A stretch of 64,000 bases of DNA from Diplonema japonicum (taxonomy: Eukaryota; Protista; Euglenozoa: Diplonemea): contig OZ025719.1 of assembly GCA_964019335.1 (NCBI GenBank), positions 124,001 to 188,000 of the forward strand, read 5' to 3'. Every line of letters begins with the position of its first letter. Positions within the stretch are counted from its first letter, which is position 1. The notes beneath the pieces are model-generated. The model did not search any database, had not been told where the DNA came from, and worked only from the letters and a program-made list of their open reading frames with translations. The position numbers and the translations under genes were made by a program. Below are positions 2,651-35,278 of the stretch, in pieces.

Positions 2651-3451
2651 ATGGTCGGTGAAGAAGAATCACAACAGGTCGAGCCATCCAAGAGTGCAGT
2701 CGAAGGCAAGAAAGGGATCCTTCTACAAGGCGTGGCACAGGATGTGTCGGTAGAGTTCTTCCAGCGGCGAGGGTGCGTCACACACCAGGTGCATCTCGTG
2801 TCAAAGCTGCACGGCGACGATGGGCTGAAGGACCTGGTACTGTACCCGAGGGAGGGCAGTGCCTACGCAAAGGTAGACCGACTGAAGAAAGCCGTGAACT
2901 GCAAAGCGGCAAAGGTGGTCACGTTAAAAAACGAGGAAACGAAAAAAAGAAAACCGACGAGGGTGGTGATGTACCAGGTAGTTGGTGTCAACGAACTGCA
3001 CAGCCACGATGTGGAGAATCTCATCACATTGTTCAACACCCGTGCGGGGACCTGCGTGAAAAAGCTAAACTACGAGGTGGGGAACAGCGGTAGGGGTAGG
3101 AAGAAAAACACGAAGATCTGCACAATCTACGTTCAGGTGGAGGACAAGCATGGAGCAGTGAACATCGCAAACTGTGCGGTCCCACTATTCGACAGCGAGC
3201 CGTACAAGCTGGTAGACTCTAGCGTGGTGTACCTCAACACACTGCAAACCTCCCCAAAACCATACGTTTTCCACCATGAAAAGTTTCCAAAGCATGTGAA
3301 GCGGCAGGCTCCGCAATATCCCCTTGAACCAGAGGTACAACTTGCGTGGGGCCCAGACGAAAGTTTCTCTAACTTTGATGTGGATGAAAGAAGTCCAGAT
3401 GTTGGCAACGAGGTACCTGAAGAGAACTCAAGAAGGCTGTATGAGCGATGA
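2651..3451 (+). CDS. Tandem family member 1: double RRM-like protein, acidic tail without HxPY
   Basis: ATG at 2651; motifs GILLQG..QVHLVSK..KDLVLY..RVVMYQV..TIYVQV..YLNTLQTSPKPYVFHH are shared with the other members; core is nearly identical to 9523-10161. Confidence 0.8.
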   Translation: MVGEEESQQVEPSKSAVEGKKGILLQGVAQDVSVEFFQRRGCVTHQVHLVSKLHGDDGLKDLVLYPREGSAYAKVDRLKKAVNCKAAKVVTLKNEETKKRKPTRVVMYQVVGVNELHSHDVENLITLFNTRAGTCVKKLNYEVGNSGRGRKKNTKICTIYVQVEDKHGAVNIANCAVPLFDSEPYKLVDSSVVYLNTLQTSPKPYVFHHEKFPKHVKRQAPQYPLEPEVQLAWGPDESFSNFDVDERSPDVGNEVPEENSRRLYER

Positions 3452-3711
3452 AAGGTTTCATAGGTGAGGAAGACGCAGGAGCAAGGCATCGTACCTCGTC
3501 GGCATTGGAGGTAAGGCAGCTATTGGCTTCTCCAGGAGGCCCTTTTCGCCACCCACTCCATGCACGACAAGCTGATGGAATTGAAAGCCGCCTACAAGCG
3601 GGACCGCATGATGAAAGCAATCAACGACCCTCTAGCTCGGGGGGCTTGTCCTGTGCTTTGAGTTGTTTTTTTTTTTTTGTTACAATTATTTATCTTTCAA
3701 AAAATGATTTT

Positions 3712-3802
3712 ATAACTATATGCAACTTGTGCCGAGCAAAAAAACTTTCGCAGCTTTTTAAAAATCTTTTTTGCTCGTGCGAACAACAAAGACATATAGT
3801 CA
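3712..3802. mobile_element. Short hairpin element with ACTATATG...CATATAGT ends
   Basis: Inverted termini; a reverse-orientation copy lies at 11411-11531. Confidence 0.5.
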
Positions 3803-3817
3803 TAAAGAATTATTATT

Positions 3818-3860
<43 letters not shown>

Positions 3861-3861
<1 letters not shown>

Positions 3862-4370
3862 TGATGGACAGGCTGCTGGGGCCGGTGCTGAGGTGGCTGA
3901 GTGGCTTGCTGTGGGATGACGCCCCTGGACGGCACACGACGGTTACGACGCTGGAGCTTGCCCTCGACTTCGAGCGGGAGACGGAGCTGCCGCTAGACGA
4001 CGGCGGGGAAGTGGGCAAGGTGGAGGACCTGGGCGTCAAGGCAAGAAGGCTGAGGTATGTGCTGAGACGTGTCCAGGACCTGTACCACGCTGATGGCAGA
4101 GGGACGGCGTTCCCAGCAGCGCGAGTGGATCGCGTCAACTCCTTGCGCTGTATAGGAGGACCGACCACATGAAAGGAGGCCAGTGCTCCCGGAGCGAACC
4201 ATGAGCAGCATCGAAGGCTTGCGTGACACGTACCTGTCGCAGACCCCGACAAGGCTGCCCCGCAGTTTTACCACCGCAGTAGGAACCCGCCAGAGCCCCC
4301 AGAACGGGGACAACGGGGACTAAGAACAGCGCGGCCGGTGAGCGCAAAAACGCATACCTTAAAAGAGTAG
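3861..4370 (+). mobile_element. 5'-truncated non-LTR retrotransposon fragment (family B), T-run flanked
   Basis: Encodes VLRWLSGLLW..TTVTTLELALDFE..KARRL..FPA..SLRCIG, homologous to the C-terminus of the 59264-60426 element; T-runs at 3819-3860 and 4371-4385. Confidence 0.7.
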
Positions 4371-4385
4371 TTTTTTTTTTTTTTT

Positions 4386-5099
4386 CACATCAGCCTGCCA
4401 AGAGTCAAGGAACTCCACCTGATGCTTGCAGATATTGCAGGAAAACTCGATTGTCTGCACGCCGACAAGCAGGTCAGGTACGAAAACCAGCACTTCTGGA
4501 ATAGACCTTTCCAGCCAGGGAACCTCTTAACCCCGAAACCTCTCACTTGGTACCACAAGAACGGGCTGGCGAAGAAGTACTTCCCAGGCCTAATCCCGTT
4601 TATCCTCAAATGGCTGAAAGCCCTCAAGTGGGGCAAGGACGGTGGGCAGGTGTCCAAGGCGGAACTTGCGGTCGACCTAATTGCAACAGAAAGGATCCAC
4701 ATGGAGGGTGAAGACCTAGCGAGCTGGGCAAGAAAAATCGGCGGAATCCTAAGAGTTTTGGACAGGATTCACCAAAAAGGCACGGGGAGTCACCTGATTC
4801 CAGCAGAACCTAGGAAATCAGTACACTCTTTGCGTACCCTAGGGCTCCACAGCCAACCCATCACTGGGTACTCCACTCGTCCGGTCTTCGCAACCCCGAA
4901 GGTCACCCACCCTATCCTAGAGGAACAGTTACGAACTCATTGCATCCTCAACAACTCGCTAGTTGGTTTCACGCCCAAGCTGCTGAAAAGATACTACGAC
5001 GGGCCTAAGGCACTACCACGACAGAAGGGATCAAACACTAGATGAGTTGATTGTCGTTAGGCGATCCTGTCACATACTGCAGGTTCCCTCAAAGACATC
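4386..5099 (+). mobile_element. 5'-truncated non-LTR retrotransposon fragment (family C)
   Basis: ORF 4422-5045 contains ILKWLKALKW..ELAVDL..IPAE..HSLRTLG..RPVFA (same C-terminal domain); T-run follows at 5100; the same 3' end recurs at 61653-61763. Confidence 0.7.
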
Positions 5100-5111
5100 T
5101 TTTTTTGTTTT

Positions 5112-5151
5112 GGCGGGCCGTTGCTAACCACTTCGTTCCTATCATAGTGAA
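5112..5151 (+). mobile_element. ~40-bp 3' tip of non-LTR family D
   Basis: GGCGGGCCGTTGCTAACCACTTCGTTCCTATCATAGTGAA also occurs at the end of the 11800-12256 element and, with small variants, at 8226 and 27246; T-rich sequence follows each copy. Confidence 0.65.
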
Positions 5152-5770
5152 TTTCTTTTTTTGTGGCCTGTTCCCTAGCTCTTGTGTGAAAGCCTTCTTA
5201 CCGAATTAGTGAAACCTACGTCAAGTACGTCAAGGTTCTTGATTCGGCAAAAAGGATAAAATGTCAAGCGTCTTGTTGTGGCTAATTTTAACCACAGGTG
5301 CTGCACTTGGTGGTGCTTTCCACGGTTTCTCACTTTCTTTTTGTTCTCCCCTTCTCCCTCTTTTTTTTTTTTTTTTATTTCTGAGGATACATTTTTACGA
5401 AGGGGAAGTCGGGGAGGGTTTTTTTCTCTCTTTTTTTTCCCCCTCCTTCTTTGCTGCACTGGCTGCTGTGCCTTAATTAGCAGATTCTTTTTCTTTCTTT
5501 TTTTCTTTTCTTTTACATCTTAGTTGATGTTTGCATGTGTATGCACAAAGATGTAAAAAGAAGAAAGCAAAAAAGGAATAAAGGAATCTGCTATAAAATT
5601 AGGGCGCAGGACCCACCAGTCAGGATAGTTGCAGACCCACCCCTGCTGCACTGAAAACACATCTCCCAGGAAATCGAGTCACGGGGAAGAGAGGGGAGGC
5701 CCCCCTTTTTTTTTCGCAGAACGTGGCAAACAATCAATTTATAGTTTAAACCCCCCCTCCCCTTCCCCCA

Positions 5771-6292
5771 GGGCTATGTTGGCAAAGAATCGCGTTTCCA
5801 AGCATTTTCTTTTTGAAAATAAGGAAACGGAAACGTTTCTTTTTTTTTTTTGAGATGGAACAGAGGGCCAGTTTTTTGCATCAGAGAAAACCAAAAAGGA
5901 CCTTAAGAAACTGGGCAAGGAGGTGGCAAGAAGAAAGAGAAGGTACTTTAAGAAAGGTAACACAGCCGAAAAAGAAAGAAAGGCCGAGGACCCGGAAGAG
6001 ACAAGGGGGACGTTCCAAAACAAGAACCTCCTTTATCTCATCTCTTTTTTTTATAGGGGCCGTTTCCTTAAGAAGGAAACGCGTTTTCCCTAACCCCCCT
6101 CAGATCCGAAAAAGTGACCCGCCGTAGTCTCAAAGGGGTTCCCATGGGGGTACACAGGGGAAAACCAAAAAAGAATGTCCGGAGGTTCACTGGAACCTTT
6201 TTTCCATTCCAGCCCTAGAAAAAACATCTGAAGGGTTCAATATCTGCAACGGAAAACGGAAACGTTTCCCCGTTTTTCTGCCAACATAGCCC
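5771..6292. mobile_element. MITE with 14-bp TIR GGGCTATGTTGGCA, interrupted by a retroelement fragment
   Basis: Perfect inverted termini GGGCTATGTTGGCA / TGCCAACATAGCCC; internal AAACGGAAACG repeats; short relative at 27807-27910. Confidence 0.65.
5852..6044 (+). mobile_element. 3' end of non-LTR family A nested in a MITE
   Basis: Matches about 60215-60426 (with a short deletion) and ends ...CCTCCTTTATCTCATCTC; T-runs on both sides. Confidence 0.75.
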
Positions 6293-6634
6293 CCCCTTCC
6301 CCCGAACTTCCTATCTATCTGAGCTTCTTCTTCGTTTTTTTCTACACAGTAAACCTTCTGCGGAGCCTGCTCCACACCACACACCCCCATATTTACACGG
6401 AGGGGGAGGGTGGTTTGGGATTTTAAAAAACCACCCTTCGCCGGCAGCGTTTAGTTTGTTATTCTTATTAAAAAAAGAAAAGAAAACAACATTGTTTAGG
6501 TACCAAATGTTTCAATGAATATATACCTCGACCGGCGACGGACGTAGATCGACGGACCCTAAGCTCAGCTCGGTAGGAGCACAAAAAGCAAGAAAAAAGT
6601 TTTTTCAACGCACACCTTAAGTTTTTTTTTATTA

Positions 6635-8158
6635 CTGTAAAACGAATAATGTCGGACGGAAAAATTCTCGGACAGAAAAACTCCCGGACACCAAAAAAAC
6701 CCGGACATTTTTCCGTCCGGGAGTTTTTCTGGGAAGAAGTTTTTTTACTTAAGGGGGGTAGCAGCTCCCACCACGTTTGCCTGGAAGGGCTTTATTCCTT
6801 GTGCAGAGCCAAAATGTCACCCTGCGTGGCAGTTTGAATTTTTCTTCCCCTTTCAATGCACCAACAAACAGCACCCACGGGATCTTTAACTTCTCATAAA
6901 CCCGTACTTCTTTCGTCAGATTGACCAGTTCGACTACCCAAGGCACGTTGAGCAGCTGGCTTGTGAGGGGCCCAACTTTGGTGCTGACACCCCCGGCCAG
7001 CTCACCCCTGAGATAAACTCCTTACACCGGGCCAGTACAAACCCCCGAAAGCAGCTTGGCAGCCTCTGCCTCGGTCAGAAGACGGCAGCAACAGGTTCAA
7101 CAGAGTCCCCGGTTTCTTCCAGACGGAAATACTGGACGTTGCTATTCCACCCAACCACACCCTGGCCGCCGCGACGCCGTGATAGCTGCGTATCGCCCAA
7201 TACGGGATTTAGCATCCTTCGGGGGCTGAAAGGTTTTTGCTTGAGTCGATAGGTAAACGGGCTTGGTGAGCCTATCCCAGCACAACAAATATGCACCTAT
7301 GCAGAAGGGTTGTTGTGCGCCAATCCAGCCCGAAAGACAGACCTGGTAGACTTTGGTGGGGCACTGTCCTTTTCCACTGACTAGGCTGACAAAATTTTGC
7401 AGCAAGAAAGACAAAAGCCGCAAGCCACCTCCGGAAAGCCCGGAAACGAGAAGGACAACGAGAAGGCACGCTGTTTCACCATGGAATTCAGGTCCATAAT
7501 CGACACCCATAAAGTAAGGCCGGAATTGGTCTGGAATACGGGGTTAAAAACCAAAACAAAAAGGGGTGCTAAGGTCGTAAAAGTCCGTGGCTTGGGGGAC
7601 AAAACGGGCTATAACCGAACAGCTGGCTGTTTCCTTGGCTGGATGGTTAAATACAAAGGCAAAGCGGAAACGCAACCGGCAGGGATTATCCGTGCCCCGG
7701 TCAAGCACCCGCCCACCGAATGGAGCCTAACGGCATCGCCCAATCATTGGGCTAATGCTTGTCGGCGACCACAACTCTCACACGACCTATGCCTATGGGT
7801 TCGTAGAGTGGTTCGCAGGCGCAAACGTGCACATTGCTTTTGTCCCCCTGGGCTCACCTACATGGTTCAACCGATGGATTTTGGGTTGAACGCAGCTGTA
7901 AAGCATCTATTAAGAAAGGTAGTAGGCCACACGAAGGCTCGACAAGCTGATTGCCTCAGGGCAGCAAGGGAGGACAAAGATGCAGAAAGGGAACCCTGGG
8001 GGTTTCTTCGCGCGGTTGCCGTTTGCAGCCCAGGCCAGTATGTAGGTGGTAGTGGACCAGGCCCCCTGACTTACCTAAAAAAAATTCCCGGACGGAAAAA
8101 TTCCTGGACGCCAAAAAAACTCGGACATTTTTCCGTCCGGGAGTTTTTCGTTTTACAG
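6635..8158 (+). mobile_element. Degenerate pogo/Tigger-like (Tc1/mariner superfamily) DNA transposon
   Basis: TA|CTGTAAAACG ... CGTTTTACAG|TA termini with TA target duplication; remnant PPGLTYMVQPMDFGLNAAVKHLLR resembles the pogo DDE_1 QP(L/M)D motif. Confidence 0.75.
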
Positions 8159-8173
8159 TATTTTATTTTATTT

Positions 8174-8218
<45 letters not shown>

Positions 8219-8225
8219 CTTTTGT

Positions 8226-8263
8226 GGCGGGCCGTTGCTAACCTCGTTCCTATCATAGTGAAA
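8226..8263 (+). mobile_element. 3' tip of non-LTR family D
   Basis: Same ~40-bp sequence as 5112-5151, between long T-runs. Confidence 0.6.
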
Positions 8264-8622: not shown

Positions 8623-9378
8623 ATGAATAATGAGCTATCGACGGGGCTACACTTAAAAGCTATCTCACACGCTGTGACTTGCAAATGGCTAAAAGACTTA
8701 GGGTGCGAAGTGGTGCAGGTACATCTCAAATCGATGAGCAACAACGAGAGGAAAGATGTTTTCGTCAAGATAACGAACGGCAAGAAAATACGTGATATGA
8801 AGTGGAAAACAGCAATGGCTCTGCAGAAGAACGGATACAAAGGGGTTGTGAAAACAACCAACATTTCAGAGACCAAACCGCGAGAACCCACCCGTGTCAT
8901 CATGATTCAAGTATCAGGAGCAGGGCGCCATATATCGCTTCAAAAGAATGACGTTGTAATTATACTCAAGAAGTTTGAGGACCGCACGCACCAAAGTTAT
9001 GTTGCTATGAACTGGAGTCGTGAATCTTCATTCGTCGTCCAAATTTACGTAGAGGTCAAGACGAGAGAGGCTGCAGAGAAAATCTTAAGGGGCCCCACCT
9101 TCGACAGCGTGCCTCACAAGTTGGAAGACGGAACTCTAGTTTATCTCAACACTATTCTGACTTGCAAGAAAACGCATGCTTACGAAACTGTCGATGTACC
9201 ATCTCCTGCTCCTTCAGGCACTGCGCTGCCAGTTTCTTCTACGGAGCCCACTGTGGCTTCTGAAGCTTCTCCTGCGGCTGCGACGCCCTCTCCTGTGGTA
9301 TCCGCACGCACAGGCGTCTTATGCCCGCCTAAAGTATCTTCTGTTTTCCGCCACGATCCTTATAATAACGGTAATTGA
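8623..9378 (+). CDS. Tandem family member 2: double RRM-like protein, P/S/A-rich tail ending in RHDPY
   Basis: ATG at 8623; GLHLKAI..QVHLKS..RKDVFV..PTRVIMIQV..QIYVEV..FDSVPHKLEDG..VYLNTILT; HDPY at 9352-9363. Confidence 0.8.
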   Translation: MNNELSTGLHLKAISHAVTCKWLKDLGCEVVQVHLKSMSNNERKDVFVKITNGKKIRDMKWKTAMALQKNGYKGVVKTTNISETKPREPTRVIMIQVSGAGRHISLQKNDVVIILKKFEDRTHQSYVAMNWSRESSFVVQIYVEVKTREAAEKILRGPTFDSVPHKLEDGTLVYLNTILTCKKTHAYETVDVPSPAPSGTALPVSSTEPTVASEASPAAATPSPVVSARTGVLCPPKVSSVFRHDPYNNGN

Positions 9379-9522
9379 TTTTTCTTGGATCTTACCCCTT
9401 CCTTTTTTTCTCTTTCTTCGGGCTTTTTGGGTGTCGGTACTCAAAGAGGTTTACAGTATCCCTCCCCCCCCCCATTTTTCTACAAACTAAGCTTAGAACA
9501 TTGTAGGGGCGGTGAGGGAAAT

Positions 9523-10272
9523 ATGGTCGGTGAAGAAGAATCACAACAGGTCGAGCCATCCACGAGTGCAGTCGAAGGCAAGAAAGGGATCCTTCTACAA
9601 GGCGTGGCACAGGATGTGTCGGTAGAGTTCTTCCAGCGGCGAGGGTGCGTCACACACCAGGTGCATCTCGTGTCAAAGCTGCACGGCGACGATGGGCTGA
9701 AGGACCTGGTACTGTACCCGAGGGAGGGCAGTGCCTACGCAAAGGTAGACCGACTGAAGAAAGCCGTGAACTGCAAAGCGGCAAAGGTGGTCACGTTAAA
9801 AAACGAGGAAACGAAAAAAAGAAAACCGACGAGGGTGGTGATGTACCAGGTAGTTGGTGTCAACGAACTGCACAGCCACGATGTGGAGAATCTCATCACA
9901 TTGTTCAACACCCGTGCGGGGACCTGCGTGAAAAAGCTAAACTACGAGGTGGGGAACAGCGGTAGGGGTAGGAAGAAAAACACGAAGATCTGCACAATCT
10001 ACGTTCAGGTGGAGGACAAGCATGGAGCAGTGAACATCGCAAACTGTGCGGTCCCACTATTCGACAGCGAGCCGTACAAGCTGGTAGACTCTAGCGTGGT
10101 GTACCTCAACACACTGCAAACCTCCCCAAAACCATACGTTTTCTGCCATGAAAAGTTTCCACAGCAAGTGGCCCCTACTGTGGAGTCGCAAGCCCCTTCT
10201 GCGCCTCCCCCACCACAGCACGACCCCAACCGGTACGCGCACACGCACAGCCCGTACACGTGGTCCCAATAA
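9523..10272 (+). CDS. Tandem family member 3: recent duplicate of member 1 with a different tail (HDPN..HSPY)
   Basis: ATG at 9523; nucleotide sequence nearly identical to member 1 up to HEKFP, unrelated after that. Confidence 0.8.
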   Translation: MVGEEESQQVEPSTSAVEGKKGILLQGVAQDVSVEFFQRRGCVTHQVHLVSKLHGDDGLKDLVLYPREGSAYAKVDRLKKAVNCKAAKVVTLKNEETKKRKPTRVVMYQVVGVNELHSHDVENLITLFNTRAGTCVKKLNYEVGNSGRGRKKNTKICTIYVQVEDKHGAVNIANCAVPLFDSEPYKLVDSSVVYLNTLQTSPKPYVFCHEKFPQQVAPTVESQAPSAPPPPQHDPNRYAHTHSPYTWSQ

Positions 10273-10344
10273 TTAGAACACGATCCTGGGCCTTCTGGGC
10301 CAAAAACCATCGGGAAATGGGTTGAGTTTGGGCACTTTGGACGG

Positions 10345-10487: not shown

Positions 10488-10517
<30 letters not shown>

Positions 10518-13544: not shown

Positions 13545-13942
13545 CCCTTCGAGTTTCACATGAAACCTTTAAGATCATACAAGAGAAAAACCTAGATTTC
13601 CTATTGGTATCCTTTTTTCTCCCCCCCCCCCACACCCAGTATCAAAAGCCCCCTTTTTCGTGATACAAACGCAAAAACTAGTTTGGCGCTCCATTTGTTA
13701 AAACTGTTTTTTTCTTCTTCTTCTTTTTTCCCCTTTCTTCCTCTTCTTGCCGTTCGTGCCTGTTGGCTAACGGCAGCCCTAATTCATATAACATTTTGCA
13801 CGAACACGTCTTTGACATGTCTCACAACAAAAAGGGGGACGACAGCACCAAACGTGCTGAGAACTTCTCCCGGGTTCTCCGGCTCGCACAAACTACGAAC
13901 CTTCCCCCCCTTTTTTTTCTTTGCATCTTTTTATACAATTAA

Positions 13943-15152
13943 CCCTTAAGGACCGGAGCTGAATAATCAGTCTAAAAAGAAATTTTAAAATTCTGCTAAG
14001 GCATTTTTAGTGCTCTGCATGCCCACTCTTTAAAGAGGGGCCTTATTGCGCGAATTTTTTTTTTACTGAACGCTATATCGCCCGTAAACTTTTGCATCCA
14101 AACTGCAAGGGGAGAAAAAAAAATAGTGGCACAGACAGTTTGTTTTTTTTACACCCCATTATGAGTCGTGCCGAAAGCACTTCTGAAGAAGGGTCAATGC
14201 CACCGGATGATGGGGATATCCCGGGAGGAAAATATTTCGCAAGGTGCCAGGTCCAAGTGTACCAGTAGTGGGTCTCAACGGGCTGGAGGTTTTTCCTTTG
14301 TTTTTGATAGGGCGGCCCTCCAGCAGGGGGCTTGTCCTGTAGGGTGGGCAGCAAGCCATTCGAGTGGTATAGAGGCCTTTGGATACTTAAAGGGCTCATA
14401 ATCAAGACAGATATCAAGGTATACTGGGCACAGGATGAACTCACAGATACCCCATATTCACAAAATTTCAGAACGGTAATGGAAAGAAACAGGCTCCTGA
14501 AAATAATGCGCCAAATGCGGTTTGGGTTGCCCCCTGGTGGAGGAGAAGGAGACAGAATGGCTAAAGGGCGCAATCTTATAAATCTTGTGGTTCCTTCTTG
14601 GTCATCCCTGTATACACCCAAGCGAAACCTTGCTGTGGATGAACCATCATACGCTGTAGAAGCCGTGTCGGGTTCATTGTTTGTGAGCCGAAGAAGAGGA
14701 AGCGTTATGGGTTCAAAATGCGATTCAGACACCGGTTACACTCTAAACATGATTGTTTGTACCGGCACGGGCACCCGGGGGAAAGAGGCAGAGCTGCTCA
14801 CACGAATATCAGCACCAGAGTTACTGGATTGTGACAAAGAACGGCCATAAGTGGTGGAAAAAAAATACCAGCCCACCCTGCACGCTGAATAAGCGCTGCT
14901 TGCCGAAACCATGGAACCCCCGGATAGCATGTGCCCTTTGCAAGAGTTGTTTCTCTCGAATGCTGCTCTACCACCAAAGTCCAAAGTTAGGGCGCGTCTG
15001 GGGCTGAAATGCAGGCCGCTTCGCGCTCCAGAAATGGGGTAGTGGAAATAATATGGGTACACACCCTCTAACTCCACCCTCGCCATTTTATTTTGGTATC
15101 TGAACGAAAAGTTCAAAATCGACTTAGACGAAAAATAGCGGTCCTTTATGGG
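13943..15152 (+). mobile_element. Defective piggyBac transposon
   Basis: TTAA at 13939-13942 and 15153-15156; TIRs CCCTTAAGGACCG / CGGTCCTTTATGGG; remnant YWAQ..PY..FRTVMERNR..IMRQMRF..YTPKRNLAVDE..CDSDTGYTLN typical of piggyBac DDE transposases. Confidence 0.85.
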
Positions 15153-15282: not shown

Positions 15283-15733
15283 ATGGTCACCGTCAGCGAA
15301 CTGCACAGCAACGACGTCCTGGAGCTACTTTCACTGTTCATGATGCGCGCCAGGCTGTATAAGAAGCCGGCCTACAACGGTAACAGCGGTAGGAAGAAGA
15401 AAACAAACATCTACACAATTTACGTTCAGATGGACGACGGACAACAAGCAGCGAAAAATCGCAAACCTTACAACACCGCTTTTCGACAGTGAGGAATATG
15501 AACTACTGGACGGCGCGCGTGCCTTTCTAAACACCCTGCAAACCTCCCCAAAGCCATATGTGTTTCTACAGAAAAGCGTATCTCCGGCACCTCGTTATAG
15601 TATCGATCCGCTTGTTTGTTATTCGGGGTACCGTGATTGCGATGGTGTCGGTACTGACATTCTGAAGCATATGTGGTTTGTGTACAGCGAAGGGAAGAAG
15701 CGACATAATCCTTATTTCGTCTGTCAGCATTAG
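15283..15733 (+). pseudogene. Tandem family member 4: N-terminally truncated, frameshifted copy ending RHNPYFVCQH
   Basis: ELHSNDV..TIYVQMDD, then one extra A in the A5 run at 15454-15458; the shifted frame reads IANLTTPLFDSEEYELLDG..FLNTLQTSPKPYVF...RHNPY to TAG 15731-15733. Confidence 0.75.
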
Positions 15734-17131: not shown

Positions 17132-17401
17132 ATGACCCGTGGTCTCAGCCTCACTACAGGCAGCAAGCGAGCAGCTCATGCACAAGGCAGGGAGGGTTTG
17201 TCCTTTACTGGTGCTGCAGATGTTACAGATCTGGAAATAGAGGACTTTGGCTGCACTGTTCATGACCGGCTTGATTCCGGGGAATTGGTGGTTTACCCCA
17301 AGGATGGCAATGTTTCCTTATGTGTACAAGGGAATGCACTGCGGTGGCTGCTGTGGGAAAGAAAGAAAATCCATGTCACTTTTAAAGTTGTTATTATGTG
17401 A
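17132..17401 (+). pseudogene. Probable divergent N-terminal fragment of the tandem family (first domain only)
   Basis: REGLSFTGAADVT..EDFGCTVH..ELVVYPKDG aligns by eye with KKGILLQGVAQDVS..RRGCVTH..DLVLYPREG of members 1 and 3. Confidence 0.4.
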
Positions 17402-22173: not shown

Positions 22174-22953
22174 ATGCCTTCATTCGTCATGTCGCAGCAG
22201 CAGCAGCATCAGCAGGGCCTGCTTCTGAGGGGTTGCTCTGCCAATGTCTCTGTGAAGTACGTTTCGGACCTGATTCTCGGTTGCCTGACCCCGTTCCAGC
22301 TGCACATGGTGTCGAACACTGTGCGGAACAGGAAGGACATGGTGTACAGATTCAAGTCTTGTGGCGGGGTGAGCATTGAGTGCGCTCGTGAAATTCTGAG
22401 GTCCAGGTTGGGAGATCAGGTGGTGGAGGTTAAGGTAATCCGTCTTAATGAGCAAGAGAAGAAGGAGACAAGGGTACCGATGGTTCAGGTCCACTGCACG
22501 CACGATACGAAATGGACATCGAAGGACACCAAGAAGATTGTGGAACTGTTCGAGCTCTACAGCGGGCACACGGTGGGGCAAAAGGACTTCCAGTTGGGCA
22601 AGAAGAAGAAGAAGGCAGGGCCCACGCACATTCGTACCATCTACATCAGGATGGACAGCTCCGATACTGCCGTTGACGTGGCCAACCCCTACAACCCGTG
22701 CATGGATGCGGTTGCCCACACGTTAGCGTCTGGTGAGACCGTTTACCTGTCGACTGTGCAGACCTCTCCTAAACCGGATGTTTTTATCCACGAGAACAAC
22801 GCTTCTGCCACCCCGCAGATTGAGGCTGTCTCCGAACAGGTTGAAGCTGTTTCCGAACAGGTTGAAGCTGTTTCCGAACAGGTTGCGCAGAGCGTGCCCA
22901 ACACATGGAGGTGGAACCCCTACTCTGTGTACGCCTATGAGTACTTGTATTGA
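22174..22953 (+). CDS. Tandem family member 5: double RRM-like protein, (EAVSEQV)x3 and WRWNPY tail
   Basis: GLLLRGC..QLHMVS..RKDMVY..TRVPMVQV..TIYIRM..VAN..MD..YLSTVQTSPKPDVFIH; WNPY at 22912-22923. Confidence 0.8.
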   Translation: MPSFVMSQQQQHQQGLLLRGCSANVSVKYVSDLILGCLTPFQLHMVSNTVRNRKDMVYRFKSCGGVSIECAREILRSRLGDQVVEVKVIRLNEQEKKETRVPMVQVHCTHDTKWTSKDTKKIVELFELYSGHTVGQKDFQLGKKKKKAGPTHIRTIYIRMDSSDTAVDVANPYNPCMDAVAHTLASGETVYLSTVQTSPKPDVFIHENNASATPQIEAVSEQVEAVSEQVEAVSEQVAQSVPNTWRWNPYSVYAYEYLY

Positions 22954-24792: not shown

Positions 24793-25578
24793 ATGTCAGC
24801 GATCTTTCTTCGAGGATGCTGTGGAAGTCTGAAATTGGCCGAGTTAAGGTGCTTGGGGCACGAAACGCACCAGGTCCACCTGGTGTCCAAGAAGCACGGC
24901 GACCTTGGTAAGAAGGACATTATTGTGTATTTTTCTGGCGAACAGCACAGCGAGGAAGAACAAAAGGCAAGACTACGGAATAACCTGCAAAATAGGGTAA
25001 TGGAAGTCAAAACTATACCCCTAAAGAATGAGCCCCAACCTCGCAGGCCAACAACAAGGGTAGTCATGATTCAGGTCCAAGGTGTCAACTCATTGAGTAA
25101 CCCCGATACCGTTCTACTAAAGGAGCTTTTTTCAGTGATCACCGATATTAAAGTTGGTGAAAAGCAATGGGAGGTGGGAAAAAACAGAAGAAGGAGCTTT
25201 GTGTGCACGATGTACGCACAATTGGAATCTCCTGAAGATGGGGCGTATGTGGCAAACTGTTGTAATCCAGCGTTGGATGCCGAAAGGATCGATCTCTCCT
25301 GCGGTGTGGGGTATGTCAGCACACTTCAAACCTCACCGAAACCTTACGTTTTTCGACATGACATCCATGTGAAGGGGAAAAACAGGCAAAGGACAGAATA
25401 CATTGACGACTCGTTTAGCAGCTCGAGTGCTGAAGGCACGGTGCAAGAATCATATTGCCACGATCCTTACCTTCCAGGAGCGCCGGTTTGGTCTGGCAGC
25501 TTCAACTGCCCTCAACTCTATGTTGAGTTCAACGGTTACAACTACTATAACTACTACGGCGCCAATGCCTGGGCTTAA
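24793..25578 (+). CDS. Tandem family member 6: double RRM-like protein, HDPY and Y/N-rich tail
   Basis: ATG at 24793; AIFLRGC..HQVHLVSKKHGD.GKKDIIVY..TTRVVMIQV..TMYAQL..VANC..YVSTLQTSPKPYVFRH; HDPY at 25459-25470. Confidence 0.8.
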   Translation: MSAIFLRGCCGSLKLAELRCLGHETHQVHLVSKKHGDLGKKDIIVYFSGEQHSEEEQKARLRNNLQNRVMEVKTIPLKNEPQPRRPTTRVVMIQVQGVNSLSNPDTVLLKELFSVITDIKVGEKQWEVGKNRRRSFVCTMYAQLESPEDGAYVANCCNPALDAERIDLSCGVGYVSTLQTSPKPYVFRHDIHVKGKNRQRTEYIDDSFSSSSAEGTVQESYCHDPYLPGAPVWSGSFNCPQLYVEFNGYNYYNYYGANAWA

Positions 25579-26339: not shown

Positions 26340-26373
<34 letters not shown>

Positions 26374-27910: not shown

Positions 27911-28162
27911 CCCTCCCCCCCCCCCCCCCCCCCCCTCTTTACTGGCACGCTTTGCGCTTTATGTGGTAGAAAACTGGATGGCCATTCTGCCGTAATGAGC
28001 GGACACAGCTTCACCACTGCAAAACACACTGGAAAAAAAAAAAAAGAAGAAAATCGTGGATCTCCTTTCAGTGTCAATTACTTCGATTATGTCCCTTTCT
28101 CCCCATTTTTTTTTTGATTTCCCCCCCCCCCTTTTTTTTTGTTAAGCGACAAACAAAAAAAA

Positions 28163-29227
28163 GAGATGAGATAAAGGAGGTTCCTGTTTTGGAACGTCCC
28201 CCTTGTCTCTACTTATCTACCCCTTTCTCCCTTCTGGGGCCTCGGCCTTTCTTTCTTTTTTGGCTGTGTTGCCTTCCTCAAAGTATCCTCCCTTTCTTCT
28301 TGCCACTTTCTGCCCAGTTTCTTAAGATCCTTCTTGGTTTTCTCTGATGCAAAAACTGGCCTTCTGTTCCATCCCAGACTCTTCTTCGCACCTATGGTTC
28401 TAAGCGCGTGGTTCTTCTTGCTCTCCGCTGGGAAGATCCGCTTGCCTCTGACCTTCTTCTGTATGCGTGCTGTGTCCCACCCTTCTTGGATTCTTTCCAG
28501 GAGGCCGTGGAAACTCCGCGCTTTCTTCTGTATCATGTCTAGATCACCCTTCTTCCCCGTGATCGGCTCGACGCCCAGCGTGTTCTCGAAGTCTAGTACG
28601 AGTTCCATTGTGGTGACTGTCGTCTTCCTCGGTCCATCGTACCACTTCAGCTTTTTGAGCCACTTGACGATGTCTTCACCGTGCTTCATCATCAGGCTCC
28701 CGCTCACATGCTTCCTCAGCTCCTTCCATTCAGGTGGCGCATGAGCGTTTCCTTCCGTTATCTGTTCCCAGGGGTGCGTCGTGTACGTTTCTAGCTTTCT
28801 CTTGTCCTGGAGAAGCTGGTCCCGTTTTGCCACCACTTCCAGTTGCGTCTTCCTCAGCCGGTGTTGGTGTGTTCGGTGACCACGCGGGAGCGTTCCATGT
28901 AGCTGCATGCAGATTGGCATTTCCGTCTTGTTGGCCACTACTTCTGCATGTACTTCCTTCTGTTGCACCTCCTTCGCCACACTGCATTCCCATAATGCGT
29001 GTCGCAGCATGTTGCTCTCGTCCTCCTCCGCACCGCACGCGTCGCATGTGACTTCGTCTGTTGTTGGTCTCTTGTTCACACGCTCGTGTGTCTCGTCCCC
29101 TTCCTCTTCCGAGCTGTCCTCGCTTTCGCTCTGCTCGCCCTCTGGGGGTGGTACCCGTCTGGTGATTTTGTCCTGGTACCACGCCTTTGGGTGGGTGTTG
29201 AAAACCCCTCCCGCCACGATCCTCCGG
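28163..29227 (-). mobile_element. 5'-truncated non-LTR retrotransposon (family A), minus-strand copy
   Basis: Near-identical to 59346-60426 apart from a 9-nt in-frame deletion (QYYLLE to QLE) and a few substitutions; zinc-knuckle CDACG..E..HALWEC; A-runs at 28155-28162 and 29229-29238 are T-runs on its coding strand. Confidence 0.8.
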
Positions 29228-29340
29228 CAAAAAAAAAATATACCCTCCCTGACTTTTTTTATTATTATTATGTACATCACAAAAAAAAGAAAAAAGAATT
29301 TCTTTCAAACAGGTTAACAACAACCCTGCAAGCATTTACC

Positions 29341-30075
29341 ATGGACGGGGTCCTCCTCAAGGGTTGTGCGGCATCGGTGCCTTCTCAATGGGAAGGGTTT
29401 GTTACCCAGAATGTTCACATGGTTTCGTCTCAGTACCCTGGTCTTAAGAACATCACGCTCCATTGCAAGAATGTGAAGCACGCCGTGAAGATGCTCAAGA
29501 AGAAGCTGGAGAATGATGTTAAGGACATCAAAGGAATAAAAATTCTTGAAAAGGACCCGAGGCCTCCTCACATGGGGGTGCTGCTGCAGCTTCACTACAA
29601 CAATGAAGTACGACGCCCCAGCAACGCTGACGTTGATTATGTTGTAAAGGAGTTCGAAGTGAGATCGGGAACAACAGTTCTTCAATCTCAATTGCCGAAG
29701 AAATCAAAATCGGGCACGCTCCACACAGTTTACCTCAAAATGGAGAACAAGGAAATCGCAGCAAAAGTAGCGAACTACAAATCACCAGCAATGGACACAG
29801 TCTGCATGGTTCTCCCAAGCGGGGCAACCACCTACGCCTCAACACTGCAAACCGACCAGTACTACTCTCATGAGGAGAATGTGAAGAAGGAGAAGCGGGT
29901 AAAAGTTGCTAGTACTTTTACTCACAACCCTTACGAGCACATCGAGTCGTGCCAGGGTACGTGGTGCGCTGTCTGTCTTCCGGGACCTTACGATTACCCT
30001 TTTGATTGTCTCCCCGACCCCTTTTATCCCTTCCCCATCATGGATTTATTTGAAGCAAATTATGGCCATAATTGA
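29341..30075 (+). CDS. Tandem family member 7: double RRM-like protein with THNPY
   Basis: ATG at 29341; GVLLKGC..QNVHMVS..LKNITL..VLLQL..TVYLKM..VAN..PAMD..YASTLQT..YSH; HNPY at 29923-29934. Confidence 0.8.
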   Translation: MDGVLLKGCAASVPSQWEGFVTQNVHMVSSQYPGLKNITLHCKNVKHAVKMLKKKLENDVKDIKGIKILEKDPRPPHMGVLLQLHYNNEVRRPSNADVDYVVKEFEVRSGTTVLQSQLPKKSKSGTLHTVYLKMENKEIAAKVANYKSPAMDTVCMVLPSGATTYASTLQTDQYYSHEENVKKEKRVKVASTFTHNPYEHIESCQGTWCAVCLPGPYDYPFDCLPDPFYPFPIMDLFEANYGHN

Positions 30076-30094
30076 CGGCCATATAAATATAAAA

Positions 30095-30129
<35 letters not shown>

Positions 30130-30412
30130 CTGATAGTTCAGAGAAGAAGAAAGCGGTGACCCCCCCCCTACAAAATTCTTTTGTTTCGCAAACAACCCTT
30201 TTTGGGTGTTTTTTTGTGGGGAAGTAGTACCGCGACGAAATTATAAAAAAATGGCTTTTTTTTTTCTTTTTTTTTTTTTTTTGAAATTCCCGAACTATCA
30301 GATAAAATAATTTAAAAAAAGAAGAAAAAAAAACTCTCCTTTTGTCCTTCCCACCATGAACTGCTTAAACGGCTGTCGTTTTATGCAGTACGTACTACCT
30401 AGCTTCATTATT

Positions 30413-31257
30413 TAACTCCAGCAAGATTTCCGTGTGTGGGAGTGAAAATCAGAATTCACTTTATTTCACTCCTGACTTTATTTTAAAGAAATTGGGCCCA
30501 GGAGTGAAAAGAATTCTGATAGCGTTTAAAATAAGAAATATTATTTCCCTCCTGGGCCTAATTTAAGCAAAACCCTCCAAGAATTCCTACCAAGGTTCCT
30601 TTGAGATGGGCAAGAACCCGACTGCACAAGAGGCGGACGCAGCAGGGTTCACCCCCTTCCAAGAGCCATACGAAAAAGGAGTGGGCACGCTTTTGTGTGT
30701 TTCATTATGGGGAAGGAAAAGAAGGACCTGTCCGAAAGAAGAGAATTCCATTCTATTTCAATGACATGAACAACCAAGGTTTGCTGTCCGTTCAGTCCGG
30801 ACGGCTTGTTCAAGGCTAAACTCGGTTGTGAAGAGGAATTACAACAAGCAGTTGCAAGACCACCCCCGACTAAAGGTCCCTCAAGAGGTTCCAAGAAGGC
30901 GAACATCTTTACCCAAGAGCAAATGATGGAATTCTTTAGCACCGGGTATGGCATCGTCCGCCACGCCTATGCAGCGTTGATGTTCGCAGGAAACATGTGC
31001 ACTACCGAGGCACATTTCTTATCCTTAGTTGTAATTTTTGTACCACCTGTACCTCCCACACACTCAAATTTTGCTGTCGTTAAATAAAATATCGTATTTG
31101 TGAATATAAGATTGATGATTTCACTTGTGGTGGCAGTTTTGGCTCGTTAAACGTTATAACACTCGCTTCGCTCGTGAAGTAATTCCCTCACTCGTCAAAA
31201 CCACTGCCACCACGCGTGAAATCATAGGATCTTTTATTCACTAAATAAATAGGTATT
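30413..31257 (+). mobile_element. Crypton-like element with a tyrosine-recombinase remnant
   Basis: Ends TAACTCCAG.. and ..TTCACTAAATAAATAGGTATT mirror those of 19231-19995; CTCGCTTCGCTCG hairpin core; KKANIFTQEQMMEFF..ALMFAGNMCTTEA resembles the start of a YR catalytic domain (G-x-x-R-x-x-E, R read as C). Confidence 0.55.
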
Positions 31258-31291
31258 TTGTTTCCATTCTGAATAAAAGTTTCTCGTTTAA

Positions 31292-33032
31292 CCCATAAAG
31301 GACCGGAGCTGAATATTCAGCTAAAAAGTTTTTTTTTAATTTTGCTAAGGCATTTTTAGTGCTCTGCATGCCCACTCTTTAAAGAGGGGCCTTATTGCGC
31401 GACTTTCTTTTACTGAACGCTGTATCGCTCGTAAATCTTTGCATCCAACCTGCAAGGGGAGAAAAAAAATAGTGGCACAGACATTGTTTTTTTTTACACC
31501 CCATAAGGAGTAGTGCCGAAAGCACTTCTAGAAAATCGAGAAGGTGGGGAGGAAAATATTTCGCAAGGTGCCGGGTCCAAGTGTACCAGTAGTGGGTCTC
31601 AACGGGCTGGAGGTTTTTCCTTTGTTTTTGATAGGGCGGCCCTCCAGCAGGGGGCTTGTCCTGTACTTTGAGTTTGTTTTTCACTCCTGCGGCTCGTGAG
31701 GTGGGCAGCAAGCCATTCGAGTGGTATAGAGGCCTTTGGATACTTAAAGGGCTCATAATCAAGACAGATATCAAGGTATACTGGGCACAGGATGAACTCA
31801 CAGATACCCCATATTCACAAAATTTCAGAACGGTAATGGAAAGAAACAGGCTCCTGAAAATAATGCGCCAAATGCGGTTTGGGTTGCCCCCTGGTGGAGG
31901 AGAAAGGAGATAGAATGGCTAAAGGGCGCAATCTTATAAACCTTGTGGTTCCTTCTTGGTCATCCCTGTATGTACCCAAGCGAAACCTTGCTGTGGATGA
32001 ACCATCATACGCTGTAGAAGCCGTGTCGGGTTCATTGTTTGTGAGCCGAAGAAGAGGAAGCGCACACAAGGTCCGAGGTGCCGCAGATATGCGACTTGTC
32101 CAATTTAAACGTATTTCTATTTTCAAGTGGTTTTCAAGAGGTTTTCAGGTGGTTTTTTAAGGTGTTAATGTGAAAAAATTCGAAACAGGGCACAGAGCAC
32201 AGGGCACATTGCTACGTTGCAATCTCTGCACGAGAACATGGCCTGGGTGCGTTTTTTCTCATTTGTTGCACACAGTGCAATTCTGTGCCTTTTGCATCTT
32301 TTCAGGACATTAAAGGTGCACCCTTGATACGTGAAAGTGCACCCTGAGGGGTAGGAATCTTAGGCTCCGGCGGGGAACACTTGATGTGGGTGCCACCCTT
32401 TTGCGATGATGTTGTTTGACAAGATTTCTTTGCCACACACTTGCTGACGCTGAATGGGTACTCTGGGAGCAATTTCCGGGTTTTCCTGATGGTCCCCATG
32501 CAGTGGAAATCCGCATTGTAAATCCGTATCAACAATGGGACAAGCGAAAGCAGTTGTCAAAGACAATCCAGTAATTCTGGTGCTGATATTCGGTGAGCAG
32601 CTCTGCCTCTTTCCCCCGGGTGCCCGCACCGGTACAAACAATCATGTTTAGAGTGTAACCGGTGTCTGAATCGCATTTTGAACCCATAACGCTTCCTCTT
32701 CTTCGGCTCACAAACAATGAACCCGACACGAAGTGGTGAAAAAAAAATAACCAGCCCACCCTGCACGCTGAATAAGCGCTGCTTGCTGAAACCATGGAAC
32801 CTCCGGATAGCATGTGCCCTTTGCAAGAGTTGTTTCTCTCAAATGCTGCTCTACCACCAAAGTTTGGGCGCGTCTGGGGCTGAAATGCAGGCCGCTTCGC
32901 GCTCCAGAAATGGGGTAGTGAAAATAATATAGGTACACACCCTCTAACTCCACCCTCGCCATTTTATTTTGGTATTTGAACGAAAAGTTCAAAATCGACT
33001 TTTAAGACAAAAAAATAGCGGTCCTTTATGGG
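31292..33032 (+). mobile_element. Defective piggyBac transposon with an internal inversion
   Basis: TTAA|CCCATAAAGGACCG ... CGGTCCTTTATGGG|TTGG; same family as 13943-15152; segment ~32064-32730 carries transposase motifs (WIVFDN, MGTIRK, Cys-rich tail) on the minus strand. Confidence 0.85.
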
Positions 33033-33318
33033 TTGGTAAAACAGGTAGGTAAATAACTGTTGCCTAAGAAGCTAGTTCCCTAGTTGGGGGACAACTTCGC
33101 CCTGTCAGCTTGGCCTAATTTCAGAAGGAAATAAAATGAAGTTCCCCCTTTTTTTTTAATTTATTTTTTTTTGGTTTGTTTAGTTTGCTTGTTTATTTTC
33201 CCTCCCTTCATTTCCTTTTTTGTTTTTGTTTTTTTTTTTTTGTTTTTTTTTTTTTTTTTTTTACCTCGAAACACTTGTTCACAATCGTCCCCCCCCCCCC
33301 CCCCCCCCCCCCTGGGCC

Positions 33319-33504
33319 TAGGGGGGTCATATGGTCCTTAAAAAGGGCCACTTTTTGCCCTTTTTCGCCAAGGATATTTTGGGCCCTTAAAAAAACTGTA
33401 ACCACCCCAAAAGTGCCCACAAATCACCCAAACCCCCGTTTCCCGATGGTTTGGCGAAGAGCCTGAAAAAGGGCAAATAACGACCCCCTTTTGACCCCCC
33501 CCCC
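33319..33504. mobile_element. MITE-like repeat AGGGGGGTCA...TGACCCCCC
   Basis: Inverted termini; internal match to 2096-2291. Confidence 0.55.
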
Positions 33505-34147
33505 TCTTTTTTCAAAATCTTTTAAAAAAATAACTATGATCCCATTGTATTCTCTCGGCCAGTACCTCTTTCCCCTTTTCTCTTTTTTTGTTTCCCTTGT
33601 CCCATCTTCTTCCTAATCACTCATACATGAGTGTTGCAAGAAGGGAGAGGGGAAGAAAAGAAAACTGAAAAAGGAAGGCAGCAGGCAGGGGTGGGGGGGG
33701 ACATAGTTATGTGTTTGCGATTACACCTTGGATGACATTATTAAACACCACATGGTTTTTTTTCGTCATTTTTATTTTCATTCTTTGCTACCTGTTGGCG
33801 CTGCTACGGGGGAAAAAAAAAGAAAAAAGAAAAAAAAAAGAGAGAAAGGTGTGATTCTCTTCATGATCTTTTTCCGAATCTTTTTTTTTTTTTTTTTTTT
33901 TTTTTTTTGGCGAAAAAGGTATTTGTAATTTAGAACGGAAAAAAAAAAAAAAAGAAAAAAAAAAAAAAAAAAAAAAAAACTGCTTCGACGAAATATTTCT
34001 TGATTTCTTTTTCTCCAACTTGTTCGGTTTCTTGACTTTTTTTTTCTTTCTTTGCGACAAAAGGAATCGTTTCCTTTCCTGCTTCATAAAAAAAAAAAAA
34101 AAAAAAAAAAAAGAATCACAGACCACTCTCGACACCCCTCCCTCACT

Positions 34148-35278
34148 ATGTCACTCAAACCTGCCCATGATGGTATCTGGCTCAGAGGCTGCTGCGCAGA
34201 CGTACCTTCGGGGTGGGTAGGAAGAGAAACCCGTCAAGTACACGAACAGTCGCAGAAGTATGAAGGAAAAAAGGACATCTTCTTAGGCCTCAAAGACGGG
34301 GAGAGCATAGAAGAGGGCTTGGAGAGCTTCCGCCGCGAGTCATCCATAAAGGGCAAGGTGCGACAAGTACGAAGTGTTACCCTAGGAAAGAACGAGGACA
34401 AGGGGGGCGAGTGTGGTAAAATATTTGTGCATTTGACATCTCCTGGACTGCTTACGGACGAAATGGTGAAGGATATTGTGGGGGAGTTTGAATGCCGTTC
34501 AGCTGTTGTTGTAGACAACAGGTACGAGCTGGCGGATAGGCACAGGAGAAGCTGCCAGCACACGATCATAGTGCAGGTGCCTGTGGTTGAAGGAAAGCAA
34601 AGGTTTTTCAAGAACGACAAGCCACTTATGGACACAGTTCTGGTCTCTAAAGCGGGCTCCAAAGTGGCGGCTTACGCATCGACTGTGCAGATGGCGAAGA
34701 AGAAAAAGTTTTACTCCCACAAGGTGAACCAAAAGAAGAGCACGAAGAAGAAGCCAAGGGGGGATCACGTCTGTTGTGAGCAACCACCGGTAGAGTGGCA
34801 GGAGGGAGGGCAGTACCAACCGTACCACCAACACCAACACCAACACCAGTACCAACACCAACACCAGTACCAACACCAACACCAGTACGAGTACCAGCAC
34901 CAACACCAGTACCAACACCAACACCAGTACGAGTACGAGTACCAGCACCAGTACGAGTACCAGCACCAACACCAGTACGAGTACGAGTACCAGCACCAGC
35001 ACCAGTACGAGTACCAGCACCAACACCAGTACGAGGACCAGCAGGAGGGGTACCTACTTCCGGTGCCAAATGCCTGCAATGCAACGGGTGGCCACCCTCA
35101 CTACGCTCACTACCCCGAGGCGGGGCTGAATCCTGCAATGTCTAACGAGGAGAACGCGAACCCTCCTTCTGCCACTCCCCCTGCTGGGCCACCCGCTCCT
35201 CTCGCTGGGCCCACCTGTTCCTCAAGGGATTCCCGTGCTGGTCCAGTCAATTTCCAAAAACGGAGCAAATCGGTGTAG
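34148..35278 (+). CDS. Tandem family member 8: double RRM-like protein with an H/Q/Y/E low-complexity insert
   Basis: ATG at 34148; GIWLRGC..RQVHEQS..KKDIFL..IFVHL..TIIVQV..PLMD..YASTVQ..FYSH. Confidence 0.8.
   Translation: MSLKPAHDGIWLRGCCADVPSGWVGRETRQVHEQSQKYEGKKDIFLGLKDGESIEEGLESFRRESSIKGKVRQVRSVTLGKNEDKGGECGKIFVHLTSPGLLTDEMVKDIVGEFECRSAVVVDNRYELADRHRRSCQHTIIVQVPVVEGKQRFFKNDKPLMDTVLVSKAGSKVAAYASTVQMAKKKKFYSHKVNQKKSTKKKPRGDHVCCEQPPVEWQEGGQYQPYHQHQHQHQYQHQHQYQHQHQYEYQHQHQYQHQHQYEYEYQHQYEYQHQHQYEYEYQHQHQYEYQHQHQYEDQQEGYLLPVPNACNATGGHPHYAHYPEAGLNPAMSNEENANPPSATPPAGPPAPLAGPTCSSRDSRAGPVNFQKRSKSV
34812..35041 (+). repeat. In-frame coding microsatellite (CACCAA/CACCAG/TACGAG/TACCAG units)
   Basis: Encodes about 75 aa of (HQ)/(YQ)/(YE) dipeptide repeats. 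Confidence 0.9.

Follow-up and report, generated by a model that had tools for sequence, protein, structure and literature searches.

What are the proteins whose genes lie in a row between nucleotides 2651 and 35278 of a 64-kb stretch of diplonemid DNA (contig OZ025719.1 of assembly GCA_964019335.1), and what do they do? The first-pass annotation of this stretch, which we call the window (C72:124001-188000 in our numbering of the 62.5-Mb, 132-contig assembly), had described up to nine co-oriented loci of an uncharacterized family with two domains resembling the RNA recognition motif (RRM), and had proposed that they encode lineage-specific RNA-binding adaptors. The best explanation that we can offer, and one that we put forward tentatively, is that they are diplonemid-specific adaptors in which a folded core binds a target, most likely mRNAs, and a tail recruits the posttranscriptional regulator MKT1. 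The proteins, of ~210 to 380 amino acids, are predicted to consist of a compact core of two ferredoxin-like domains followed by a disordered tail that carries a short linear motif. The core would bind specific mRNAs, the tail motif would bring in MKT1 together with PBP1 and LSM12, and the bound mRNAs would be stabilized or better translated, as with the HNPY-bearing RNA-binding proteins of trypanosomes. It is because ferredoxin/RRM-like domains are combined with an MKT1-type tail motif that we regard these proteins as possible adaptors for gene control at the mRNA level. This proposal builds on a family restricted to diplonemids, on its predicted fold, on a conserved and enriched motif, on the presence of genes for the MKT1 complex and on rapid sequence divergence, each of which is taken up below.

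The cluster in the window is a genuine family array. A hidden Markov model (HMM) built from 15 members and run over the six-frame translation of the window detected seven complete open reading frames (ORFs), all on the plus strand, with E values of 1e-61 to 1e-78 (Table 1). Seven of the nine proposed loci therefore stand as intact, co-oriented genes, but the other two do not. The locus at 15286 is a frameshifted fragment in which HMM positions 96-164 and 142-211 match in different frames. The ORF at 17132 has no match to the family HMM, and BLASTP aligns it weakly with the N-terminal half of a dispersed paralog, L009 (33% identity over 76 residues, E 2e-5), so that a decayed remnant is the most that it can be. 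The series of motifs that the first-pass annotation had listed corresponds to real alignment columns spanning ~200 residues, and the array members are as divergent as it had stated, with pairwise identities of 23-37%. The sole exception is the pair 2651 and 9523, whose DNA is 96% identical over 732 bp (matching 9444-10170 and ending at 3298) and whose cores differ at 4 of 642 nucleotides. The similarity stops at residue 213, and the tails of the two copies therefore differ, that of the 2651 protein having been replaced after this point.

Past the core, the tails cannot be aligned (MAFFT) except for one block, (Y/W/F)-x-H-(N/D)-P-Y. The strict form H[NDEQ]PY occurs in 12 of the 28 family proteins, always C-terminal to the core; 11 of the carriers were counted by script and the twelfth, 8623, had been missed by the core-end rule of that script. 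Close variants (WNPY, YDPY, H-x-NPY) are found in five more proteins, giving ~17 of 28 across four species. Examples in this genome include TWRWNPY (22174 and L008), GYHHNPY (L017) and YHTNPY (L009), and other species contribute SHDPY, RHNPY, RYDPY, RHEPY, VHDPY and THDPY as well as VHNPYA and THNPYAS at the C-terminal end. Shuffling of the tails gave a mean expectation of 0.18 strict motifs, and none of 20,000 shuffles reached the observed count; the strict motif is also absent from ~60,000 residues of other ORFs in the window and at other genome loci (18,227 + 27,570 + 14,137). Since the carriers are related proteins, these counts are not independent events, and the evidence proper, read from the alignments, is that the motif has persisted while the surrounding sequence diverged, including in a very divergent member from D. 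papillatum. Within the array, the motif is present in 8623, 24793 and 29341, modified in 22174 and 34148, degenerate in 9523 and lost from 2651.

By sequence, this block corresponds to the published MKT1-binding consensus of Trypanosoma brucei, (Y/W/T)(R/T/Q)H(N/D)PY, or more loosely (H/N)(D/E/N/Q)PY (PMC3985637). In that organism, ZC3H11 no longer binds MKT1 when PY is changed to AA, the CFB2 nonapeptide PRRFRHDPY suffices for the interaction with MKT1 when assayed by yeast two-hybrid, and the proteins that carry the motif are strongly enriched for RNA-binding proteins (PMC3985637). CFB2 stabilizes the VSG mRNA through its H(N/D)PY motif and MKT1 (PMC8051951). The conserved C-terminal H(N/D)PY, which the first-pass annotation had not seen, thus lends independent support to the adaptor idea. 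Glutamine-rich tracts are a second feature enriched in trypanosome MKT1 partners (PMC3985637). The 34148 protein has QYQPY at the motif position, followed by a long (Y/E)QHQ repeat that is encoded by an 18/24-bp tandem repeat; this tail is not a poly(Q) tract.

Elsewhere, the genome encodes the machinery to which such a motif would connect. An intact MKT1 of 799 amino acids has XPG_N, MKT1_N and MKT1_C domains. It shares 90% identity with its counterpart in Diplonema ambulator (a D. japonicum MKT1 falls into the same 90% cluster), 77% with that of D. papillatum and ~70% with proteins of Hemistasia, Rhynchopus, Artemidia and Namystynia; conservation across diplonemids ranges from 67 to 90%. These comparisons place the genome among the diplonemids, near D. 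ambulator and D. japonicum, and a kinetoplastid identity, which the spliced-leader motif had at first suggested, was rejected on the strength of the MKT1 and family matches. Five LsmAD matches above the cutoff represent PBP1/ataxin-2-type proteins, and one AD match above the cutoff, with one in-frame TAA stop, represents an LSM12-type protein. Two of 25 CCCH zinc-finger ORFs, L035 and L050, end in an MKT1-type motif, and we consider them candidate diplonemid counterparts of the trypanosome ZC3H-type MKT1 partners. Genome-wide, the coding pattern Y-x-H-N/D-P-Y has 24 occurrences and the reversed control has 7. The preference at the free codon of the pattern is that of trypanosomes, with Arg in 11 of the 24 cases and Thr or Gln in a further 4. 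The CCCH termini and the codon pattern suggest that the MKT1-HNPY code is in use in this diplonemid. The canonical RRM proteins of this genome contain no HNPY, and no relevant paper turned up when the literature was searched for MKT1 in combination with diplonemids. A second MKT1_C match (L022) has an in-frame TAG; because D. ambulator and D. japonicum each possess two MKT1 paralogs (90% and 75% identical to the intact protein described here), L022 may be a second MKT1 copy, a pseudogene or an intron-bearing gene.

The fold of the core was predicted for the 24793 protein by AlphaFold2 with a 15-sequence alignment as input. Residues 1-195 are modeled mostly at a predicted local distance difference test score (pLDDT) above 90 as two beta-alpha-beta-beta-alpha-beta units (residues 1-76 and 90-176), with an extra strand in domain 2, and are followed by a disordered tail. 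Foldseek against the PDB places tandem RRMs at the top, with HuR RRM1-2 as the best match (E 3e-4, probability 0.91). VIA, a structural search independent of Foldseek, returned RRM-type domains for domain 2 in 45 of the 50 matches listed (Z 8.4-6.6), led by 1wex (Z 8.4, root mean square deviation 2.7, 89 residues) and including RRM2 of an hnRNP L-like protein, raver1, the qRRM of hnRNP H and the UHMs of PUF60 and SPF45. Language-model look-alikes are RRM clusters as well (0.82-0.87), which we take as a lead only. Domain 1, modeled alone, reached a pLDDT of 84, and its matches (Z at most 6.7) are ACT domains, protease prodomains, S6, RAM domains and a few RRMs, so that it is best described as generically ferredoxin-like. 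An RRM/ferredoxin fold in each half, as first proposed, is therefore borne out by topology in both domains and by the fold searches for domain 2, but domain 1 is not specifically RRM-like. Comparison of the two domains by hhalign gave a probability of 0.6% and therefore no evidence for an internal duplication.

At the sequence level, the RNP1/RNP2 consensus is absent: beta1 of domain 2 reads VVMxQV, beta3 reads TIY, and there is only one conserved aromatic residue. The most conserved columns lie in the strands, among them domain-2 beta1 (VVMxQV) and beta3 (I-x-TIY), and in a TLQTSPKPxVY extension. The basic loop that had been noticed in the second domain is real and variable, lying between beta2 and beta3, and most members are mildly basic (pI 7.6-9.8). 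Judged from the models, the family would work like a non-canonical RRM protein, domain 2 having the RRM fold and the RRM signatures failing in sequence.

The family is restricted to diplonemids. The HMM found ~20 loci in the genome, among them a copy 70 kb upstream on the same contig, pairs, single copies and partial copies (Table 1). An exhaustive profile search, which read 1.84 billion representative proteins, returned 24 matches, of which 5 are proteins of this genome (all in EukProt; P0001 is the 22174 ORF) and 14 come from D. ambulator, D. japonicum and D. papillatum, the D. papillatum member being annotated "hypothetical protein." No kinetoplastid or euglenid protein matched in this search. 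The family is thus lineage specific, true homologs having been found only in Diplonema species, and the spread across euglenozoan proteomes that the first-pass annotation had suggested looking for was not seen. Of the five ENA matches, P0013 and P0018 were rejected as homologs because these bacterial or phage-like proteins are repetitive and owe their match to an ISTLQVKPSEG-like repeat unit, and P0017 and P0020, with the same multi-stretch pattern, were rejected likewise; P0024 (ENA) is a weak, unclassified match (E 2e-4). Single-sequence and alignment queries of the protein collection returned nothing or only P0012, and the word index seems to miss these EukProt entries. The description of the family as uncharacterized also holds: Pfam has no family for these proteins, and a sequence-profile search of the PDB gave chance matches only.

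One member departs from the common architecture. L086 is a protein of 1266 amino acids in which the family double domain forms the N terminus and is followed by a P-loop (AAA_16) and by TPR_12/TPR_10 repeats; the AAA_16 matches are weak and below the Pfam cutoff, and the TPR repeats are NPHP3/MalT-like. An ortholog in D. ambulator is 48% identical (P0007, P0025). A stretch of ~110 residues between the double domain and the P-loop looks ubiquitin-like by eye.

A maximum-likelihood tree separates two supported clades, one in which the domain fused to the NTPase groups with L017 and a set of D. ambulator proteins, and one that comprises all array members. The array is not monophyletic, since 22174 pairs with L008 and 34148 with L011; it did not arise as a simple local burst. 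Some subclades are exclusive to D. ambulator. The claim of fast divergence is supported: no member is more than 37% identical to a D. ambulator or D. japonicum homolog, versus 90% for MKT1, and the family would appear either to evolve very fast or to turn over. The ratio of nonsynonymous to synonymous substitution rates (dN/dS, NG86) is 0.10 for L009/L010, 0.31 for L015/L018, 0.51 for 34148/L011 and 0.69 for 22174/L008; no interpretable pair exceeds 1, and most other pairs are saturated. These values argue for selective constraint that is weaker in the array, and do not demonstrate positive selection. A ratio of 1.03 for 2651 versus 9523 was discarded as due to the replaced tails, and the cores of this pair, with three nonsynonymous and no synonymous changes, offer too few events to interpret.

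Several points weigh against the adaptor reading and keep it tentative. Domain 1 is as close to ACT domains, prodomains and S6 as it is to RRMs, and fold scores of Z 8.4 or less lie in a range common for any ferredoxin-like arrangement. In line with the earlier statement that canonical RNP1 and RNP2 are lacking, no RRM family was found by Pfam in the 15 members at E values up to 10, and when 17 canonical RRMs encoded in this genome were compared by hhalign, the probability was 0.4% with domain 2 and 2.2% with domain 1; structure prediction thus points to an RRM fold for domain 2, but profile comparison does not connect the family with RRMs by sequence. In many RRM-like domains, the ligand is a protein and not RNA. 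There is no good motif in three of the seven intact array genes (2651, 9523 and 34148), nor in L011, L015, L016 and L018, and MKT1 binding through HNPY has been shown in trypanosomes only. Finally, the public protein set lacks five array proteins and represents, of the array, only the 22174 product, next to four dispersed members (EukProt); these entries are probably transcript derived, since other diplonemid entries are Trinity transcript ORFs. Of the words sampled from the stretch, 56-85% occur in ten sequencing runs of one organism, none of which is listed as RNA.

The closest known parallels are found among the trypanosome MKT1 partners (ZC3H11, ZC3H20/21, PUF and DRBD proteins; Singh et al. 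2014, PMC3985637), which likewise join a nucleic acid-binding type of domain to a motif that lies in a disordered region, frequently at the very C terminus, and whose partners MKT1, PBP1 and LSM12 are also encoded in the diplonemid genome. The diplonemid core, however, is a new family without a Pfam model and is neither CCCH, PUF nor canonical RRM. The cyclin F-box proteins CFB1 and CFB2 of T. brucei (PMC8051951) are alike in being clustered, lineage-restricted paralogs without a canonical RNA-binding domain that end in FRHDPY, a hexapeptide found identically in the 8623 protein, and CFB2 stabilizes mRNA via MKT1. They differ in their N-terminal, SKP1-binding F-box: the Pfam scans of the 15 members, at E values up to 10, detected no F-box family, the fold being instead a double ferredoxin/RRM-like core, and no sequence homology to CFB proteins was found in the exhaustive search, which worked by profile and not pairwise. 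Because of the missing F-box and the lack of sequence similarity, we do not consider the family homologous to the CFBs. With the non-canonical RRMs (qRRM, PTB/hnRNP L-type, UHM), it shares the topology of domain 2 and its best structural matches, but it differs by the absence of RNP1/RNP2 and of profile similarity, by the extra strand and the conserved TLQTSPKPxVY extension, and by a domain 1 that is not specifically RRM-like. L086 resembles STAND/NACHT-like NTPase-TPR proteins in its order of N-terminal domain, P-loop (AAA_16) and TPR_12/TPR_10 repeats; it differs in that a single such fusion was seen, and its NTPase class rests on the weak AAA_16 matches.

L086 gives weight to the principal rival, which we regard as doubtful yet worth keeping in view. 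The double domain would be a protein-protein interaction module of pseudo-RRM or ACT-like type through which the free-standing members bind a protein partner, possibly the L086 NTPase-TPR protein, and either bring MKT1 there or are regulated by the complex. In L086 and its D. ambulator ortholog, the family domain occupies the N-terminal position, where STAND-type NTPases usually have an effector or a homotypic adaptor domain, and the missing RNP1/RNP2 signatures, the ACT-like domain 1 and the presence of UHM and qRRM domains among the fold matches would all suit such a module. RNA binding, however, would better account for the conservation being highest in the central strands of domain 2, at the RNP positions, with a Tyr kept on beta3, for the mostly basic character of the proteins and their basic loop, and for the enrichment of RNA-binding proteins among trypanosome HNPY carriers.

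The motif might also have another role or be a relic, in a family that is real but whose ferredoxin-like core binds a small ligand or is regulatory and has nothing to do with mRNA control. The ACT and RAM regulatory domains among the best matches of domain 1 fit this idea, as does the fact that MKT1 binding in diplonemids is a prediction from sequence and that some members are without the motif, but we judge it improbable, since each position of the motif and of its flanks agrees with the trypanosome consensus, CCCH zinc-finger proteins of this genome terminate in the same motif, the x position is Arg biased genome-wide and MKT1 itself is well conserved across diplonemids. A more far-reaching scheme, to which we give very little credence, would make the double domain a homotypic adaptor: it would form the N terminus of a STAND-like NTPase-TPR sensor (L086), and the fast-evolving free-standing paralogs, which sit among active retroelements, would couple this sensor, or their own recognition of foreign or retroelement RNAs, to the MKT1-PBP1 translation machinery in an innate-immunity-like or conflict-driven pathway of mRNA fate.

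If the array proteins are indeed MKT1 adaptors, they would bear on gene expression in organisms that rank with the most abundant heterotrophic eukaryotes of the sea. Diplonemids share with trypanosomes polycistronic, trans-spliced gene expression, and control must therefore be largely posttranscriptional; to our knowledge, almost nothing is known of the regulators of diplonemid expression. The present family, previously undescribed and without a Pfam model, has a core predicted at high confidence. The sequence evidence suggests that the MKT1-HNPY recruitment code is older than the split between kinetoplastids and diplonemids and that, in diplonemids, it may be wired to a lineage-specific and rapidly diversifying set of adaptors. 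That these proteins are at most 37% identical between species, versus 90% for MKT1, raises the question of what drives their divergence. D. papillatum is transformable, and the hypothesis is therefore directly testable.

Table 1. Family loci, motif-bearing proteins, repeats and neighboring features (window coordinates unless a contig or locus is named)
Feature	Position	Strand	Remarks
Family paralog 2651, 266 aa (amino acids)	2651..3451	+	HMM E 1e-74; core nearly identical to 9523 copy; H(N/D)PY motif absent
Family paralog 8623, 251 aa	8623..9378	+	HMM E 7e-63; terminus ...VFRHDPYNNGN, HDPY at nucleotides (nt) 9352-9363; matches T. brucei CFB2 motif FRHDPY
Family paralog 9523, 249 aa	9523..10272	+	HMM match; recent duplicate of 2651; degenerate QHDPNRY / HSPY
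Domain-2-only pseudogene fragment	15286..15715	+	HMM E 1e-7 and 2e-15; two frames, stops after
Doubtful domain-1 remnant, 89-aa ORF	17132..17398	+	Weak BLASTP match, no HMM match
Family paralog 22174, 259 aa	22174..22953	+	HMM match; P0001 (EukProt); TWRWNPY, WNPY at nt 22912-22923
Family paralog 24793, 261 aa	24793..25578	+	HMM match; AlphaFold2 query; SYCHDPY, HDPY at nt 25459-25470, then Tyr/Asn-rich end
Family paralog 29341, 244 aa	29341..30075	+	HMM match; TFTHNPY, HNPY at nt 29923-29934
Family paralog 34148, 376 aa	34148..35278	+	HMM match; QYQPY variant; tandem repeat of tail at 34827-35043
L008	Same contig as window, 70 kb upstream		HMM match
L009 + L010	Two contigs		HMM match; near-identical pair
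L015 + L018	C79		HMM match; tandem pair
L011, L016, L017			HMM match; single copies
L012, L013			HMM match; partial copies
L014/L086, 1266-aa protein	G000:C109:78700-82900; L086:334-4131	-	Family domain at N terminus
L035 CCCH protein	C107		...VSRHDPYAF at residue 624 of 629
L050 CCCH protein	C37		...YYRNDPYSW at residue 157 of 169
L022, second MKT1_C match	C8:67883-68644		In-frame TAG
High-copy dispersed repeat between family genes	6622..8200	.	At least 40 copies, 91-99% identity
Older dispersed repeat	13939..14704	.	At least 40 copies, 78-89% identity; self-match, also at 31288-32062
Young dispersed repeat	28151..29227	-	At least 40 copies, 92-100% identity; second copy at 59353-60438
Decayed relatives of 355-aa ORF of young repeat	3771-4172; 4422-5045
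ATG3-like autophagy E2	1411-2097	+	Autophagy_act_C E 4e-20
Coiled-coil protein, 1561 aa	36294-40979	+	GAS and ATG16-like coiled-coil matches
102-bp (34-aa) periodic repeat	48272-50168		Translation ankyrin-like by eye

The family genes are embedded in repeats. The statement that transposon debris lies between them was upheld for three pieces, each with at least 40 genomic copies at 78-100% identity; the piece starting at 6622 gave 2667 first-look candidates genome-wide. The repeats found by self-BLAST exclude the family genes, apart from the 2651/9523 duplication and the fragment at 15283. That the ORFs are transposon cargo or debris, or a decaying and functionless pseudogene array, is hardly credible: their position among high-copy repeats, the two fragmentary loci, the lost tail of 2651 and the absence of most array copies from the public protein set would fit, but the family comprises ~20 divergent loci that do not lie within a repeat unit of matching copy number and identity, seven frames are intact despite identities of 23-37% and dN/dS is below 1, homologs of the same architecture occur in the transcriptomes or genomes of three other species, and the flanking repeats vary from gene to gene.

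The young repeat encodes a 355-residue ORF with a weak zf-RVT match and a KWLKKLKWY...ELVLDFE block. Relatives of this ORF in a decayed state occur in the window, and others adjoin L013 and L016 of the family. The gene for the ATG3-like protein lies immediately upstream of the array, and the gene for the coiled-coil protein marks its downstream boundary; a periodic repeat lies farther downstream (Table 1). Diplonemids share the 3' end of the euglenozoan spliced leader, and its 3' 19 nucleotides (CAGTTTCTGTACTTTATTG) occur 232 times in the genome, over most contigs and often a few kilobases from contig ends. They are not limited to a single spliced-leader RNA array, as exemplified by C5:515-533, C6:1908-1926 and C24:7178-45964.

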